From Fimbriosthenelais zetlandica (Eukaryota), in the NCBI GenBank assembly GCA_977030845.1, contig OZ365119.1, forward strand, positions 12,834,001 through 12,898,000: a stretch of DNA of 64,000 nucleotides, in the 5' to 3' direction. A program made the translations under genes and the position numbers. Positions within the stretch are counted from its first letter, which is position 1, and each line of letters begins with the position of its first letter. Below the pieces are notes generated by a model that had not been told where the DNA came from, did no database searches, and saw only the letters and a program-made list of their open reading frames with translations. Below are positions 830 to 9,305 of the stretch, piece after piece.

Positions 830-962
830 ATTAGTGGCGCCCTCAGTGGCGAGTGAGGGGAACTTGGTCTCAGACTGGTGCTGCTGGCCCGCCGCTACCA
901 ATGCGCCACCATCGGTACCGGCAGATAGCTGAACTAACTGACCTACTTTACAATTCAAAATG
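830..962 (+). promoter_or_regulatory. CpG-richer promoter/5'UTR of the zinc-finger gene
   Basis: GC/CpG-rich island in AT-rich DNA, AGTGGCGCCCTC motif at 833-844, YY1/Kozak-like AAAATGGCGG at the start codon. Confidence 0.5.
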
Positions 963-3900
963 GCGGACTATGAGCATGAAAACCCGACGTTGAATCATGA
1001 AAACGAGGAAAATGACAACATTGTCAACAGAACAAGTGAAGCTCCACCCTCCCCACATCTGAGTATGTATTTCCGTGTAAAATCTACCAAGATCGGTCTC
1101 TGAAAAGCTTGTCTATCTCTGTAAAACTTTGATCACTGCTGCGCGCTTGCCAATGTTTTTTAATTTTTTATGTTTCCGCGCGCAGGCTGGTCGGTTGTCT
1201 ACTGATTATATCCGCTGTTATCATTAAATTAATTTATCATCTCTTGACGTACAAACGATATGTGATGATAGGCCTGTCATATTGTGAGGAGTCGACTCTT
1301 TAGCTCTTGTCAATGAGGGGAAATCCATTGTTTTTGTGCCCGGAACTTGGTGGGTTTATGATGAGCGATAATATGTGGGTTTGTCTATTGGCGGGACCAT
1401 AGAACCGACACTCCGCACAGTGGCCCTCCAGTCGTTCCTCCAGTTATATTTTATTAACTATTGCCCAGACCTGGTGTTAATGATAATTACGAAACATCCT
1501 TTTAGACTGTGGTTAGTACTTTTACGAAGCAGATTTTACAGAGTAGCAGGCCTACGAGAACTTTTTACCAAAGTGAAAGTAGAAGTGATTTTACAGTTTT
1601 TAAAGACTGTCAGAATTTACATGCTTTTATAAACACTGCTGATTATATAGATCAATCCTTTTACTTTCTACAATTTTACCTCAACATTTTACCTTCATAT
1701 TACTAATCTACATAGGCCTACTTCTTTTAACCCTATTGATTTCATCTTGATGGTTTTGGTACTAGTGTTTCAATATTAATTGTTTGATAAAACATGTCTC
1801 GCCATGAATATAGCCTTTAGCAGCTGGCACGGCGTTAAATCACCATTCATTCATTCATTCATTCATTCATTCATTCATTCATTCATTCATTCATTCATTC
1901 ATTCATTCACTTTCATGCATAAAACTAAGAGAGCCGCCCTCCACACCCAAAAGAGAGATGAGAAACCCAAAAGAACCACACGCCGAACATGTGGCATGAA
2001 CCTTCCCATGCCACACCCCAAAACTGAGCTACTCAAACGCTCACCATGCTATGCTGGAGCTACCCAATGGAATGGGTAGCTCCAGCTCCAGCTCCAGAAT
2101 GGGAATGCCCTCCCCAACAGTCTTAAAGAAATTAAAGACCATAGCTCATTTAAACCTGGGTATAAACTGCAGTCCTGTAAAACATGTATTTAATTAATCT
2201 TCTGATTCTTGCAGATCTTGAGGAGAGAGGGGAAGGAGAAGAGGAGACAGGAGGAGAGGTGGAGAAGGAAGCACGTGGGACTGAGACAGAAGCCGACGAC
2301 ACGCTGTCTGACTGTTTACCACCATTCATCCACACAGCTTATCTAGATGCTAAGACGGGACAGATGAAAAATAACAGACAGGAACAACCAGAAACCTCAG
2401 AGAGAGAATGTGGGCACGTAGAGAATGGTAGAAATGATGAAAAAGACAATGAGATGAAAAGAAATGAACATGAAGAAAGTCATGAGAAAGCGGAATCTGA
2501 GAAAGTGAAATCTGAGAATGGGGAATCTGAGAATGGGGAATCTGAGAAAGGAGGGGAAAGAAGAGCTGAAGAAGATGAAGATGACATAAACACAAAGAAA
2601 ACAGATAAAGGGGAAGAGAGGAACCAAGAGAATGAGAGCAGGCGAAATGATGAAGATGATAACAAGACAGATGAAAGGGAAGAGGAGGAAGGAGAAGAGA
2701 AGCTGGATGTGGTATATGGAGAAGTTCATTCTACCACAGAAGTCAATGGAGCATCAGAGAAGGTGGAGAGAAGAGGAAGAGTAGTGGGCTCCATCCATAA
2801 TGTCACTCTAAACGAGGTAAAATACTCTAAAATACTCATAATGTCACCCCAGCAAAGTCAAATACTCATAATGTCACCCCAGCAAAGTCAAATACTCATA
2901 ATGTCACCCCAGCAAAGTCAAATACTCATAATGTCACCCCTGCAAGGTCAAATACTCTAAATTCGACTATCATAATGTCACCCCAGCAAGGTAAAATACT
3001 CTAAACTAGACTATATTCCAGTCTTAATATCATGTCAACCCTTCCAACAAGGTAAAATGTTGGTATTATATTTCAGGCAGCTGAATGTGAGGCATCTAGG
3101 ACCACTAAGACTGGAGAGGACAGATTGAGGGAGGAGAGAGAGGACAGATTGAGGGAGGAGAGAGAGGACAGATTGAGGGAGGAGAGAGAGGACAGATTGA
3201 GGGAGGAGAGAGAGGACAGATTGAGGGAGGAGAGAGAGGACAGATTGAGGGAGGAGAGGGAGGACAGATTGAGGGAGGTGAGAGAGGACAGATTGAGGGA
3301 GGAGAGAGAGGACAGATTGAGGGAGGAGAGAGAGGACAGATTGAGGGAGGAGAGGGAGGACAGATTGAGGGAGGTGAGAGAGGACAGATTGAGGGAGGAC
3401 AGATTGAGGGAGGTAAGAGAGGACAGATTGAGGGAGGCGAGCTTCACTGAGGTGATGCAGCAGTGGGGTGGAGGACCATGTCCCGTGTACAGGTGTAGGT
3501 CATTAGGTAACTACCTTGATGAAGGTATGAGAGCTACTCACTATGAACACGCTCACATGGAGTATAGACTGGTGTATGACTGCCCCTACACACACTGCCC
3601 GGGACAGAACGACTCATTCCAGTCTCCTGATCTCCAGGAACTCATCACCCACATGAAGGGGTCCAGTCATACGTCATCACCTGATGACGTAGACAGACTG
3701 ACGACTAATCTCTTACCCCGGAAGATCCGGAACGCTGGCTTCATACCGGCCATGTTAGTGGAGGGTGGGGGAGGTAGAGGTGAGGGTGGGGGAGGTAGAG
3801 GGGAGGGTGGGGGAGGTAGAGGGGAGGGTGGGGGAGGTAGAGGGGAGGGTGGGGGAGGTAGAGGGGAGGTGATAGAGTACCAACACACCATACAATATGA

Positions 3901-6900
3901 AGATTTACCTCATGATCAACACAAGTCAGACGATATCTCACACTTATTACAGATGCCGGATGAAGTGGCGGACATCTGGCGCGCCACCCGGAAGTGCCCA
4001 GTGGCTAACTGTCGCAGTCCTGCCATGAAACTGAAACATTTCTTTAACTGGCATTGGTATACGTTCCATGAGGCCCGGATCAAGGTTTATTACTGCCCTG
4101 TAGATGGATGTGAGAGAGAGGGACGTGCATGGACAGCCAGGCAGAAACGTGATGTAGTGGTTCACTTAAAACAACAACATAAAACCACAGACATACCTGA
4201 CACAGTGGCCTGTCAGATTATTAAAAACCCCGACTATAAACCCCCGACCCACCTACAGGGGTCAGACGAGGATAAACCCCCGACCCACCTACAGGGGTCA
4301 GACGACGAGGATAGACCCTCTCACCACCAACATGAGGAGGAGCGGAAAGAGAGTAAGAGAGGCCGGGGGCGTGGACGGGGCAGGGGTCGGGGCCGGGGCC
4401 GGGGTCGGGGCAGGGGCAGGGGCAGGGGCCGGGGCCGGGGCAGAGACACACCGATGACTGAGAGGAGAGGTGGACTAGCGGACGAGGTAAAGTCAGAGCG
4501 GGTTAAGATACCTCGTGAGTTAGAAGCGGCGTGGGAGCTTATCAAGACATGTCCATGTGAAGGCTGCCCCTCCCAACAAATGAAGGAGAGACGTGAATTA
4601 GTAGAACACTGGCTTGATTACCACACAGAAGACATCACGGTGTATGCCTGCCCAGACGCCTACTGCCAGGTAACCTCACTCAGTCTCTATATTCTAATAT
4701 TCTCTATAATTTTTTTTTTGAGTTTTTGGGACAATTTTATTAATACCAATACCACCTTTCGGTGTATTTTCAGGCTGTCCAACAATATTTACAATATACA
4801 GTATAGTTATAGTTACAAATTAGTAATATAATACATTCATTGATTAATACAAAAGGAAAATACAATTATATATAGTTATACTAATTGCAGTCTGAAAATG
4901 CCTATATTTTAATATTCTCTATCCTTTTCAGCAATCCTGCAGTGAGGGAAAAATCAATTGATTTAAAGAAACAATATGTGTATAATGAGGTGGTGTATTT
5001 GGTGATGAAGTATAATGAGGTGGTGTATTTGGTGATGAAGTATAATGAGGTGGTGTATTTGTTTCAGATGAGAGTCGGGGATGGCGTTATGAGGTTTAAG
5101 AAGCCCAGGAAGCACCAGGTGTTTGAACACCTAATGAGCTCAGAACATGGTCTGAGCTTGGGAGAGGCAGAGCAGATGGTGAAAGCTCTACCACCAGAAA
5201 CCGTCATCAACCGTAAATATATACCACCCAAAATATCATACAAACTAACCAGCCAGGAACCAGACCCACGGGGCAGAGCAAAATCTGCTGACAGAGACAG
5301 GCAGAGTCAGGGTGGCAGAGCCAGATCTGCTGACAGGGACAGGCAGAGTCAGGGTGGCAGAGCAAGATCTGCTGACAGAGACAGGCAGAGTGCTAGGAAT
5401 CAGAGGCAGGGCAGATCACAGTCCACAGACTCCGAGCAGAGTGATAATTCAGGCAGCAGGCCCCGCAGATCACAGTCTGCAGGCAGACGTGGGCGAGGCA
5501 GACCTGGTAAATCCAGCCAGGACAGCATGAGACAGGAGGGAAGCGCACTCAGCCTGAAGACGCCATTAACACAGGCTGAATTAGAAGCTTATGAAAGCAG
5601 TGACCAGATCCCTGAGTCATACCGGGGTCTGTATGTGGAGGGTGGAGGATGCCCGGCTGTAGGATGTACATCAGCCTCCTGTACCTTCACCACTATACAC
5701 GACCTGAGCCTCCACTGGAAGTGTAAACACCTCCACATCGTGCCTCAGTACTGGTGTCCCTGCATCGACTGTACCTTCACTGTTAAACGTAAATCTAACT
5801 TACAGGTGCATCTACAGAACATCCACCACAAACCAGCCAGCGTCTGTCAGGATTTACTCAACAAGGCCTTTGCTGTACATGTAGAAAACCCTGATTATGA
5901 GTTACCCGTGCTACCCAAATCAAACCATTCACCCAAATCAAACCACTTACCCAAATCAAACCATTCACCCAAATCAAACCACACTGAGGGAAGTGTGAGA
6001 GGGGAGGCTGGGGTATGTGATGAAGAGAAGGAGATGATGAGTCCTCCTGCTAAACGACGGAGGGAAGAGTCGGGAGGAGAGGGAGGAGAGTTAGGGGGAG
6101 AGGGAGGAGAGTCAGGGGGACAGGGAGGAGAGTCAGGGGGACAGGGAGGAGGGGCGGGAGGGGGAGACCCGATCCCAGATAGACCATGTACAGCGGGAGA
6201 CATGGCGGCCTTCGCGAGAGACTTGATTAACCAGGTGCCCGAGGCTTACTATGATGTGTATAGAAGGACAGGACGATGTCCGTCCACGACATGTCCTCAT
6301 GGTAGGACCAAACTTAACATGCTCTCCATCATCCGACATTGGAGGTCCATGCATAGAGAAATAGTACCAGTGTATAAATGTAATCTAGACGACTGTGGCC
6401 GGAGTTATATCAAACAGAGAGAGTTACAACAACACTTGAAAGACACTCACGACCTGCTACCAGCGGCCGCACTCACTCTCTCTAAGGCTGCTCGACCTCA
6501 CTTTGGTAATAACCCCAACTACATCCCCCCAGTTCATCCTAGCTCAGTCAACAAGACAACATCACACAGTACAAAGAGAGCAGAGAAAGAGAGTGATGGA
6601 GAGATAGAGAATACACCATCCAACCCAACACTGCCTACTACCACTAGAGGGAGAGGGCGGGGAAGAGGGAGAAGGAGAGTATCCATCACCGGATCGACCC
6701 ACCATTCTGAGTCTCCTACACCTACTGAAGCCAGTGGAAGGAGGCGCGGGGGAGGGGTTAACATAACGACAGAGATATCAGACAGCTCAGATACTGAACC
6801 CCTGACCGTGCCCACACCAAGAAAGACAACGTCAGCCATAGGTAGGGGGAGAGGTAGAGGGAGAGGGAAGAGAAAGAAGTCTCCAGACACCTCACATAGT

Positions 6901-8799
6901 GAAGCTTCACCTCCTAAACATACTCCTGTAAATAACGGGAGAGGGAGAGGGAAGAAAAACCAGACTCCAGAGACCTCTGATTCTGAATTAGAGAAGCCTC
7001 ACACTCCAAGATGGACAAGAGGCAGAGGGAGAGGGAGAGCTAGAGGGAGAGGGAGAGGGAGAGCTAGAGGGAGAGGGAGAGGACAAGGGTACAGATCAGA
7101 CCTGAAGTCAGCAGCTGGGTGGAAGGAGTCAGAAGATGTGTCAGATAAAGTGTCAAACCTGAGTGAGGTGAAACAGGACCCTATATACAACCTGAGTGAG
7201 GTGGATCAGGACCCTACATACCAGCCCTGTATCAGACTACAGCCTGTCATGAGTGAGGTGGATCAGGACCCTGCATACCAGCCCTGTATCAGACTACAGC
7301 CTGTCATGAGTGAGGTGGATCAGGACCCTATATACAACCTGAGTGAGGTGGATCAGGACCCTACATACCAGCCCTGTATCAGACTACAGCCTGTTCCTGA
7401 CGTGATGAGAGGTCCAGCTCTCACTGTCACTCCATATAAACACCATGACGTCATACAGGCAGGTCAGGAACAATGGATCATGAGGAAACGAAGCATCGTC
7501 AAGATAGCAGATGCTAGAAGACGAAGAGATGCCAGCCCAACCCCCTCTACCAGAAGAAGAGATGCTAACCCAACCCCCTCTACCAGAAGAAGAGAAGCTA
7601 GCCCAACCCCCTCTACCAGAAGAAGAGAAGCTAGCCCACCCCCCTCTACCAGAAGAAAAGATGCTAGCCCACCCCCCTCTACCAGAAGAAGAGAAGCTAG
7701 CCCACCCCCCTCTACCAGAAGAAAAGATGCTAGCCCAACCCCCTCAAACAGACGAGGTGCTCCTAGTCCAACTCCCTCTAACAGACGAGGTGCTCCCATA
7801 CGTAGGAGCACGCGAGCTGCCAGAGCCTCTACCAGTTCAACCCCGAGAAAGAAGCGAGAGTCAGAGAGCAGGCGAGGCCGTGAACAGATAGAAGGAGAGA
7901 GAGGTCTGGTAGAGGAGATGGAGGAGGATGGCGTGGGGATGTACTCTAGTAATGGTTCAGACGCTGAGGTGATGGATGTATCATTCGATGATGATGATCA
8001 TCATCTAGGTGTAGAGATCCCAACTCTCCAAGACGCTGGACTACAAGTGTGCTCCCTCCCTACAAGACAAAGGTTACCTCACCAAGCACAGCCGTCTGTT
8101 AGTGGAGAGAGAGGAGGGGAGGCGGGAATGGGGGGTGTGGGGCCAGGGGTGGGGGGTGTGGGGCCAGGACTGGGGGGTGTGGGGCCAGGGATGGGGGGTG
8201 TGGGGCCAGGGATGGGGGGTCTAGGTCCAGGAATGGGGGATGTGGGGCCAGGGATGGGGGATGTGGCGGGAGCGATAGCTGAACTGAAACAGAAACAATC
8301 TGAGATTATAAAACAACTTGAAAATCAAAATAAATCATCACTCGCTGAACTTCATAAAGAAATACATGACTTAAAGTCAATGAACGACACACTGCGTCAT
8401 GAGAATGATACATTACGTCATGGGATGACGTCAGGTGAGGCGTGGAGGACGGAGAAAGACGCGCTCCAGTTACAGCTTCATGAGAAGGACGCTACAATAC
8501 GGACATTACAGGACGTACTGGCACGATTCATAAACCCAGCAAACGTTACCAACCAAACGTTACCATCAGCTAAACCTTCCACGTCAACCTCCACCACTCC
8601 TGCCACCCCTGCCACCCCTGCCACCCCTGCCACCCATCACATGGTGGCTACACCTCCCGCACCCCCACCTGGACTCTCATCCAGTCAGAGATGCTCTGTG
8701 ACGCTGCGGACCGGCGCCATTATAAACTTTGATTACCAGTCCACGGCTGATTTCATACAGAAGATCAACACTCTAAATGATCAACAGGAATTAAGATAA
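960..8799 (+). CDS. Uncharacterised ~2009-aa multi-C2H2 zinc-finger protein with five paired-finger modules, RG/GR repeats and a C-terminal coiled coil (4 coding exons)
   Basis: Exons 960-1062 (ATG in AAAATGGCGG, donor GTATGT, phase 1), 2215-2816 (acceptor TTCTTGCAG; donor GTAAAA at 2817, alternative phase-0 donor at 2712), 3077-4669 (acceptor TTTTCAG, donor GTAACC), 5068-8799 (acceptor TTTGTTTCAG, TAA 8797-8799, AATAAA ~8822). Phases are all compatible and total 6030 nt. One C2H2 finger (CPDAYCQ|MRV...HLMSSEH) is completed only by the exon 3-4 junction, which supports the model. Confidence 0.82.
1844..1909. repeat. (TTCA)n microsatellite in intron 1 of the ZF gene
   Basis: About 16 perfect CATT units. 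Confidence 0.95.
2820..3000. repeat. 30-bp minisatellite at the start of ZF intron 2
   Basis: Unit AAATACTCATAATGTCACCCCAGCAAAGTC, ~5 copies. It explains the repetitive tail of ORF 2184-2960. Confidence 0.9.
3114..3436 (+). repeat. Coding 24-bp tandem repeat (REEREDRL)n
   Basis: About 13 units, in frame within ZF exon 3. Confidence 0.9.
7520..7795 (+). repeat. Coding 33-bp tandem repeat (RRREASPPPST)n
   Basis: About 8 units, in frame in ZF exon 4; SP/TP-rich basic tract. Confidence 0.9.
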
Positions 8800-8869
8800 A
8801 TAGTACACATGTACGGAGATAAATAAAAACATGAACTAACTAAACATAAAGTTAGCTACCGTGGATGAT

Positions 8870-9305
8870 ACAAGATGGTACCAAAACTGACACCAAGACA
8901 TGGTACAAAGTGGAACCAAGATAGAAACATTGAAAGTGGTACCAAGGTGTGAACTGACACCAAGACGTGGTACAAAGTGGAACCAAGATACAAACATTGA
9001 AAGTGGTACCAAGGTGTGAACTGACACCAAGACATGATACAAAGTGGAACCAAGATAGAAACATTGAAAGTGGTACCAAGGTGTGAACTGACACCAAGAC
9101 ATGGTACAAAGTGGAACCAAGATAGAAACATTGAAAGTGGTACCAAGGTGTGAACTGACACCAAGACATGGTACAAAGTGAAACCAAGATAGAAACATTG
9201 AAAGTGGTACCAAGGTGTGAACTGACACCAAGACATGGTACAAAGTGGAACCAAGATAGAAACATTGAAAGTGGTACCAAGGTGTGAACTGACACCAAGG
9301 TACAA
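8870..9305. repeat. 67-bp minisatellite just downstream of the ZF stop/polyA signal
   Basis: Unit ...GTGGTACCAAGGTGTGAACTGACACCAAGACATGGTACAAAGTGGAACCAAGATAGAAACATTGAAA, ~6.5 near-identical copies, no unique spacers. Confidence 0.95.

Follow-up and report, generated by a model that had tools for sequence, protein, structure and literature searches.

A 64,000-nucleotide stretch of DNA from Fimbriosthenelais zetlandica (GenBank assembly GCA_977030845.1, contig OZ365119.1, positions 12,834,001 to 12,898,000 of the forward strand; hereafter the window) contains, at positions 960–8799, a real protein-coding gene with a product of 2009 amino acids (aa) and five domains of about 100 aa. Each of these domains, referred to here as modules, consists of two C2H2 zinc fingers with its own added elements, and the domain is a distinct, unnamed, well-conserved variant. 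Since it sits in the C2H2 superfamily, it does not amount to something new in kind. The domain is found in three contexts: giant host proteins with several modules, small proteins with a single one, and the third open reading frame (ORF3) of Gypsy retrotransposons. The presence of the module of the window gene in ORF3 of a young Gypsy element is a new observation.

The region contains two long open reading frames (ORFs), 3125–4831 and 4885–8799, both on the + strand and in differing frames. The join 960–1062/2215–2816/3077–4669/5068–8799 (+) gives 6030 nt, i.e., 2009 codons and a terminal stop, with no internal stops. This model has four exons and three introns; every junction is GT–AG, and the phases agree. 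Intron 1 is bordered by the donor CTGA/gtatgt at 1062/1063 and the acceptor ttgcag/AT at 2214/2215, intron 2 by GAG/gtaaaa at 2816/2817 and atttcag/GCA at 3076/3077, and intron 3 by CAG/gtaacc at 4669/4670 and gtttcag/ATG at 5067/5068. The original prediction, made by a model from the letters alone, had been of a spliced protein of about 2000 aa with five modules; the clean spliced frame and the five module matches described below bear it out. No gag, pol, or long terminal repeat (LTR) was found near the gene.

A paralogue is located on the same contig about 215 kb upstream (C38:12,618,498–12,623,767, minus strand; loci L016 and L028). Its five modules correspond to those of the window protein and keep their order; the same coiled coil and C-terminal element come after them, and its module 3 is interrupted by an intron at the identical codon (TGTGAG/gtcagc ... 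tgtccag/GTA). Two orthologues, P0003 (1082 aa) and P0008 (873 aa), have the modules and the C-terminus in common with the window protein. In the genomic contig of P0008, an acceptor occupies this same position of module 3; P0003 has no intron there. The exons of the window gene are as follows:

960..1062, + strand: putative exon 1, 34 codons and one base; ATG at 960, donor GT at 1063, open frame and splice consensus, in phase with exon 2
2215..2816, + strand: putative exon 2, acidic low-complexity N-terminal region; splice consensus, frame runs on into exon 3
3077..4669, + strand: exon 3, encoding modules 1 and 2, finger 1 of module 3, and repeats of REEREDRL, GEGGGGR, and (GR)n; donor CAG/gtaacc placed as in the paralogue
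5068..8799, + strand: exon 4, encoding the rest of module 3 as well as modules 4 and 5, RG-rich repeats and others, the coiled coil, and a small C-terminal domain; stop at 8797–8799

The position of the exon 4 acceptor (tttcag/ATG) matches both the paralogue and the P0008 genomic contig. Exons 1 and 2 are putative, the evidence for them being the open frame and the splice consensus; a tblastn search with these N-terminal exons yielded no counterpart in the paralogue or in the P0003 locus.

Pairwise identity among the five modules of the window protein is merely 22–31%, and a test independent of them was therefore used. A hidden Markov model (HMM) was built from 70 modules of other species, with the window gene, the paralogue, P0003, P0008, and the transposon copies left out. 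On the window protein this profile gave exactly five near-full-length matches (profile positions about 4–95 of 95+) with independent E-values (iE) of 3e-4 to 5e-12 (Z = 1e6); the shuffled window protein gave none. The match to module 3 (iE 1e-11 for the spliced module) is continuous over the 4669/5068 junction, which is evidence for that splice. The modules have the following limits:

3449..3757, + strand: module 1, residues 360–462; iE 3e-4 with the other-species profile; pairs with module 1 of the paralogue, support 100/99
3953..4255, + strand: module 2, residues 528–628; iE 6e-11; groups with module 2 of the paralogue and residues 148–248 of P0003
4505..4669, + strand: first part of module 3 (N-terminal helix, finger 1, start of finger 2), residues 712–766; HMM match
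5068..5238, + strand: second part of module 3 (rest of finger 2, helix, NRKYIPP tail), residues 767–823; HMM match
5599..5913, + strand: module 4, residues 944–1048; iE 5e-12
6226..6537, + strand: module 5, the one modelled, residues 1153–1256; iE 1e-11; AlphaFold2 predicted local distance difference test (pLDDT) 90.7

These limits enclose the five module positions proposed originally, and the homology of the units suggested there is upheld by a profile that recovers all five without the gene itself and its close relatives. A regular-expression search of the spliced product found ten CCHH fingers in five pairs, each finger with two Cys and two His, as well as all the tails that had been named (NAGFIP, NPDYKPP, NRKYIPP, NPDYELP, and NPNYIPP). 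The linker between the two fingers is 8 residues long in all five modules (e.g., HREIVPVYKC). Neither TGEKP nor TG(E/Q)(K/R)P occurs in the product, in agreement with the earlier statement that TGEKP linkers are lacking. Cys-to-His spacing is looser than canonical (12–17 residues in finger 1 and 12–21 in finger 2, both with H-x4-5-H), and finger 2 has the canonical C-x12-H spacing in several modules.

In a maximum-likelihood tree (91 rows, 102 columns), each module of the window protein pairs with the module of the same rank in the paralogue (supports 100/99, 98/98, 98/83, 97/71, and 98/95), which indicates that the five-unit array predates the duplication. Over the modules and the C-terminus, the two proteins are 37–50% identical; the proportion of nonsynonymous differences (pN) is 0.33–0.43 and that of synonymous differences (pS) 0.66–0.85. 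Because pS exceeds 0.75 and is saturated in most modules, the two proportions are given instead of a ratio of substitution rates (dN/dS). A check for purifying selection had been proposed with the original prediction; run on the paralogue, it found pN well under pS. This is the pattern expected if purifying selection is confined to the modules, the coiled coil, and the C-terminal element, the linkers being unalignable and fast-evolving. The C-terminus is 41–42% identical to those of P0003 and P0008 (BLAST), and for module 4 the identity with P0008 reaches 49.6% across 119 aligned residues.

The linkers of the paralogue are unrelated to those of the window protein (ETGRPDR, SRQGPVNGP, TNRPTRQTPARPGC, and KSASTKSVTA), and its upstream acidic repeat exon cannot be aligned to exon 2. 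In the window protein, successive modules are separated by 65, 83, 120, and 104 residues. The coding repeats detected by Tandem Repeats Finder have periods of 24, 21, 36, 6, 42, 18, 33, 57, and 9 nt with 82–100% matches; all periods are multiples of three. The arrays bear out the idea that simple repeats expanded independently between the modules. Arrays of RG are specific to the window copy; the paralogue, P0003, and P0008 have none:

4358..4444, + strand: longest (RG)n array, residues 663–691; Tandem Repeats Finder

Other RG arrays begin at residues 905, 1293, 1358, and 1417–1438.

Predicted folds of the module and the C-terminal region

The order of elements within a module is an N-terminal helix, the first finger (CPVxxC...F..HWxxxH), the 8-residue linker, the second finger (YxC..C...L..HLxxxH), a helix, a strand, and the NxxYIxPG tail. 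AlphaFold2 was applied to module 5 from the six-row alignment A1 only. A single compact model was obtained, with a mean pLDDT of 90.7 and a predicted template modelling score of 0.69. According to DSSP, it contains a helix at 6–15, the finger 1 helix at 32–43, a strand at 46–51, and the finger 2 helix at 64–75, followed by a helix at 79–88 and a strand at 92–95 right before the NPNY tail; the tail itself has a pLDDT of about 84. The beta-beta-alpha arrangement (strand pair and helix) is seen twice in the predicted module. The order of the DSSP elements suggests that the pre-tail strand 92–95 packs beside strand 46–51 of the long finger 2 hairpin.

Conservation was examined over 79 family modules. 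Of the eight zinc ligands, seven are invariant, and the remaining one (C52) is present in 78 of the 79. The first Cys is followed by P in 71/79 and by V in 56/79 modules, W follows the first His in 65/78, Y precedes finger 2 in 48/79, and L precedes each His pair. At positions around the start of the finger 2 helix, K or R is found in 29–47% of modules. In the tail, N is conserved in 70/79, Y or F in 71/78, I in 40/77, P in 69/78, and G in 41/78. A conserved tail had been predicted as NPxYxP; the tail is indeed conserved, while its form across the family is NxxYIxPG, with P at the NPxY position in 23/79 modules. The compact model and the conservation over the whole unit support the earlier view that the finger pair and the tail make up one predicted fold unit. 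We considered the tail as an NPxY sorting motif or a ligand of phosphotyrosine-binding domains and rejected this, P being conserved in only 23/79 modules and the tail being modelled inside the folded unit.

That the module cannot be assigned to a named family was likewise supported. On the window protein, Pfam gave only generic or atypical C2H2 models, all under their gathering cut-offs. The best was zf-C2H2 (PF00096) on the exon 4 product (21.9 bits vs. a cut-off of 25.2); the exon 3 product had no significant Pfam match. Among the 79 family modules, zf-C2H2_4, zf-H2C2_5, zf-Di19, zf-C2H2, and OrsD were the most frequent matches, each in at most 15 modules, with zf-C2H2 at E < 0.01 in 12/79. 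A profile search of Protein Data Bank (PDB) sequences retrieved ordinary finger pairs of TFIIIA, CTCF, Tramtrack, and KLF4 at E 2e-4 or weaker, with only the fingers covered.

Structural searches with module 5 led to the same superfamily. Foldseek found nothing in the PDB at E ≤ 1e-3; Tramtrack 2drp had a template modelling (TM) score of 0.64 normalised by target. VIA-align against 48,161 chains gave a best Z of 4.8 for an archaeal-virus finger. The viral models of BFVD contained no match to the module. In the Swiss-Prot part of the AlphaFold Database (AFDB), the best match was the C-terminal finger pair of RPN4 (E 7e-3, TM 0.46–0.57). Searching the ESM Atlas by shape returned ZNF800-like proteins (TM about 0.5), and its feature search returned basidiomycete C2H2 clusters (0.93–0.95), to be taken as leads only. 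Confident matches to the whole unit were found among AFDB clusters (E 3e-7 to 1e-3, TM 0.5–0.7 over residues 17–103), in small proteins labelled ‘C2H2-type domain-containing’; the organism field was blank, and from their accession ranges we take them to be from Mytilus and Crassostrea. We found no paper describing the two-finger domain; as subscription journals were thinly covered, this is weak evidence of absence.

The classical tandem C2H2 fingers (PF00096; Tramtrack 2DRP, TFIIIA 1TF6, CTCF) resemble the module in their Cys2His2 ligands, beta-beta-alpha fold, and tandem pairing, and finger 2 of the module often shows the same C-x4-C-x12-H-x4-H spacing. The module differs from them in lacking TGEKP and in having the CPV knuckle, a near-invariant HW, and H-x4-H in both fingers. 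It also adds N- and C-terminal helices, a strand, and the NxxYIxPG tail, modelled together as one globule. A Krueppel-type poly-finger array was rejected as a description of the window protein: TGEKP-like 7-residue linkers are lacking, and the pairs are 65–120 residues apart.

The families zf-Di19 (PF05605) and OrsD (PF12013), which are known from plants and fungi, are also double C2H2-like zinc domains of similar size and match 13/79 and 11/79 modules, respectively, at E < 0.01. All these matches are under the cut-offs (module 5, 20.4 bits vs. 27.5; best among family members, 26.2 vs. 27.5 and 22.6 vs. 26.6), and neither family has the NxxYIxPG tail as far as the matches show. In P0058, the OrsD match is shifted relative to the module and takes in finger 2 together with the finger after it. 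The fingers 1–2 of yeast Zap1 (1ZW8) and the C-terminal pair of RPN4 are, as in the module, two C2H2 fingers known or modelled to be packed together; their scores are weak and in the range of a common arrangement, and they have no sequence relationship to the module and different flanking elements.

AlphaFold2 modelled the last 180 aa as two long helices, a disordered stretch, and a beta-beta-alpha element (144–177):

8263..8532, + strand: coiled coil, two long helices; AlphaFold2 helices 3–57 and 60–92 of window positions 8257–8796
8686..8787, + strand: small conserved C-terminal beta-beta-alpha element (CSVTLRTGAIINFDYQSTADFIQKI...); AlphaFold2 strands 144–149 and 155–160, helix 163–177, pLDDT 77–85

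The two long helices correspond to the coiled coil that had been expected after the modules. The last 180 aa are the best-conserved part of the protein (mean column identity 63% over four homologues), and the beta-beta-alpha element is kept in the paralogue, P0003, and P0008. Feature and shape searches of the Atlas with this region were uninformative, as long helices match anything. A homodimer model with a parallel in-register coiled coil reached an interface score (interaction prediction score from aligned errors, ipSAE) of 0.44, and none of three controls exceeded 0.00. Contacts common to the runs amounted to at least 58%, with a partner pLDDT of at least 60. Among proteins solved as one-chain pairs, 21 of 30 attained the mark applied, and among those solved as single chains, 0 of 23. 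The model supports dimerisation of the C-terminus as a parallel coiled coil.

Just upstream of the coiled coil, at residues about 1746–1765 (window about 8005–8064), a GVEIPxxxDAGL sequence preceded by an acidic run is conserved between the gene, its paralogue, P0003, and P0008, and could be a linear motif for interactions. No transmembrane segment was seen on reading the product by eye, no predictor being used. Within the own genome, the C-terminal region is found only in the gene, the paralogue, and two broken fragments (C38:198743–199092 and C39:4729548–4729897; L024–L027). The fragments are near-identical (E 3e-20 and 2e-16), each is interrupted by TGA, and they are probably a duplicated pseudogene piece.

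Family members and the Gypsy accessory gene

A profile search of 1.84 billion representative sequences gave 1511 proteins at E ≤ 1e-3, of which 106 reached ≤ 1e-10 and 15 reached ≤ 1e-30; many of the weaker matches were generic C2H2 proteins. At least one full module including the tail was present in 56 of the best 150 representatives, and in 64 of 160 scanned sequences when cluster duplicates, the window protein, the paralogue, and the transposon ORF3 were also taken in. The largest numbers of modules counted were 14 in P0001, 10 in P0002, and 7 in P0007. A word-indexed protein search came up blank for modules 4–5, the C-terminal 194 aa, and the transposon ORF3, which means little, since the exhaustive profile search found the family. 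P0012 is also 2009 aa long; it has no full module, and the equal length is a coincidence.

The members with a named source come from Sinanodonta woodiana, Mizuhopecten yessoensis, Argopecten irradians, Gigantopelta aegis, and Haliotis rubra, every one of them a bivalve or a gastropod. A lineage-specific family had been suggested, and as far as names go this holds, all named members being molluscan. P0002 and P0010, both with several modules, are the Sinanodonta woodiana proteins KAL3831323.1 and KAL3831324.1, with consecutive locus tags, which points to tandem family paralogues in this freshwater mussel as well. The Haliotis member is fused to an RNA recognition motif (RRM) domain. Current labels of family members are ‘uncharacterized’, ‘C2H2-type domain-containing’, and, wrongly, ‘serine-rich adhesin for platelets-like’ (Gigantopelta aegis).

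Against the own 447-Mb genome, the module profile gave at least 114 matches. About 90 of them, with near-identical scores, lie in dispersed ORFs of about 600–735 aa, mostly 729 aa. One element copy was dissected in full (C1:1,549,102–1,562,668; L013, L018, L019). It is a 13.6-kb Gypsy LTR element, the two 1255-bp LTRs of which are 99.92% identical, with a TGG... primer-binding-like site 2 nt past the 5' LTR. It carries gag with a zf-CCHC knuckle, pol with protease (PR), reverse transcriptase (RT), ribonuclease H (RH), and integrase (INT), and ORF3 between pol and the 3' LTR. ORF3 is 711–729 aa long and contains one module and long low-complexity regions; the match covers profile positions 6–98, including the tail region, at E about 6e-10. 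Diverged sister elements (L029, L031, L032), with pol 32–99% identical to that of the dissected copy, also carry the module in ORF3. On a contig of another organism, the single module of P0119 is 2 kb downstream of PR-RT-RH-INT on the same strand. The element lineage carrying the ORF3 module consists of abundant, recently active Gypsy retrotransposons.

ORF3 of the own genome has the same full-length module as the host gene. It differs in having a single module per protein and in being encoded by an element together with gag and pol; the module is all that it has in common with the host protein (25% identity), and it lacks the host coiled coil and C-terminal domain. We therefore rejected the window gene as an ORF3 copy, since it also has introns and is not accompanied by gag, pol, or an LTR. 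All transposon modules fall into a single clade of the tree (99/78), the backbone of which is unresolved. The host family and ORF3 probably have a common ancestry for the domain, and capture by the element and domestication by the host explain the data equally well. The original prediction of a domesticated transposon module thus stands as regards the link to a transposon, the module being present in Gypsy ORF3; domestication is not told apart from capture by the tree.

Two single-exon ORFs, C25:19798684–19798956 (L010/L033, 330 aa) and C21:5940088–5940369 (L012/L034, 306 aa), have one N-terminal module each, and neither gag nor pol lies within 5 kb of them. They stand closer to the host modules than do those of the transposons. 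A C-terminal ...CTVNFSNGHCLKFIY... motif of the 330-aa ORF recalls the C-terminus of the giant protein. The later helical stretch and the short C-terminal motif of these small ORFs were judged by eye only.

CERV of the Caenorhabditis elegans element Cer1 is reported to be an accessory protein of an LTR retroelement (PMC10309623). CERV and ORF3 are alike in being an extra gene beyond gag and pol in an element of the Gypsy/Ty3 type; this is an analogy, and it concerns the ORF3 relatives only.

The finding is thus of a compact two-finger domain, unnamed in databases, that is built into some very large molluscan proteins (up to 14 units) and into a Gypsy accessory gene, and it offers a concrete entry to the role of ORF3 in these elements. 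Should the host genes descend from ORF3, or ORF3 from them, it would be clear that retroelements and hosts have exchanged a domain outside gag, pol, and env. As the module is small and confidently modelled, it should express easily.

Possible function

The function that we consider most likely, although we hold it only about evenly between right and wrong, is that of a dimeric, multivalent nuclear nucleic-acid-binding scaffold. The C-terminal coiled coil would form a parallel dimer, bringing together about ten two-finger units on flexible charged linkers. Each unit would bind nucleic acid via the basic N-terminal part of its finger 2 helix, and the protein would then be a multivalent nucleic-acid-binding scaffold of the nucleus. 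The RG arrays of the window copy could add general RNA affinity or sites for arginine methylation. We infer nucleic-acid binding from the C2H2 ancestry, the basic start of the finger 2 helix, the fusion of a relative to an RRM domain, and the occurrence of the unit in a retroelement accessory gene; the RG arrays and the TFIIIA, CTCF, and Tramtrack pairs retrieved by the PDB profile search were also counted in its favour.

Several points weigh against this reading. The residues conserved across the family are structural (zinc ligands and core), with no fixed basic surface. The modelled two-finger globule resembles pairs that do not bind DNA, e.g., fingers 1–2 of ZAP1 (Z 4.1). The RG arrays, missing from the paralogue and the orthologues, cannot belong to the core function of the family. 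Finally, the dimer result may reflect generic coiled-coil behaviour, the calibration of the tool on eukaryotes being weak.

Because the conserved residues are structural ones and the model shows the pair as a globule, the main rival is that the module is a protein-interaction or zinc-dependent structural unit, and the giant protein a scaffold recruiting partners, perhaps via an exposed NxxYIxPG tail or the conserved ...EIP..L.DAGL motif that precedes the coiled coil. We regard this as unlikely, but as deserving serious attention. It agrees with a predicted structure that is one compact unit, not beads on DNA, with conservation confined to core and tail residues, and with structural neighbours that include the interacting, non-DNA-binding ZAP1 pair. 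Sub-threshold Pfam matches to ZNF451-, ZNF462-, and Sina-type fingers, which occur in interaction contexts, fit it as well. The canonical C-x12-H spacing of finger 2 in several modules, the basic helix start, and the fusion of one member to an RRM domain speak against it, and the tail, being modelled within the fold, would not be a free linear motif.

A still less probable reading is that the host gene is a domesticated Gypsy ORF3, fivefold multiplied, that serves as a decoy or repressor by binding the same element RNA, DNA, or partner. The presence of the module in ORF3 of abundant young elements, the age of ORF3 within that Gypsy clade, its presence in another genome, and the host ORFs of 306–330 aa with a single exon and one N-terminal module speak for such an origin. 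However, the host modules do not fall inside the transposon clade, the backbone being unresolved, and the module alone is common to the two proteins, at 25% identity. The host family is itself old, occurring in bivalves and gastropods, and capture of a host module by the element fits equally well. We give similarly little credence to an exchange of the ORF3 domain between host and Gypsy elements in which the host copies would be dimeric multivalent binders of the RNA, DNA, or cofactor of ORF3, i.e., a retrotransposon-derived control system; if true, it would be a class of domestication beyond gag, pol, and env.

It is more doubtful again that the protein is an ordinary sequence-specific C2H2 transcription factor with widely spaced fingers. 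Its nearest neighbours do include the DNA-binding pairs of Tramtrack, TFIIIA, CTCF, and KLF4. This is offset by the lack of TGEKP and of a contiguous array, the pairs being 65–120 residues apart, and by the sub-threshold zf-C2H2 score in Pfam. In addition, an extra helix, a strand, and the tail wrap the finger pair in the AlphaFold2 model, and retrotransposons use this unit in an accessory protein. A non-functional, decaying transposon-derived or repeat-rich frame, to which the high content of recently expanded simple repeats might point, is very improbable given 2009 codons free of stops across three introns, an intron position kept in three genes, pN well below pS, repeat periods that are all multiples of three, and no gag or pol nearby.

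Other features of the window

Introns 2 and 3 each contain a 30-bp tandem repeat (window 2830–3014 and 4980–5061; 97–100% matches), and intron 1 contains a (CATT)16 microsatellite at window 1844–1909. A possible poly(A) signal follows the gene:

8822..8827, + strand: AATAAA, 23 nt past the stop codon; consensus match only

Directly 3' of the gene, window 8885–9299 is occupied by a 67-bp tandem repeat (6.2 copies, 97% matches), which creates long spurious ORFs on the minus strand. A run of N, either masked sequence or an assembly gap, lies at window about 40470–41030.

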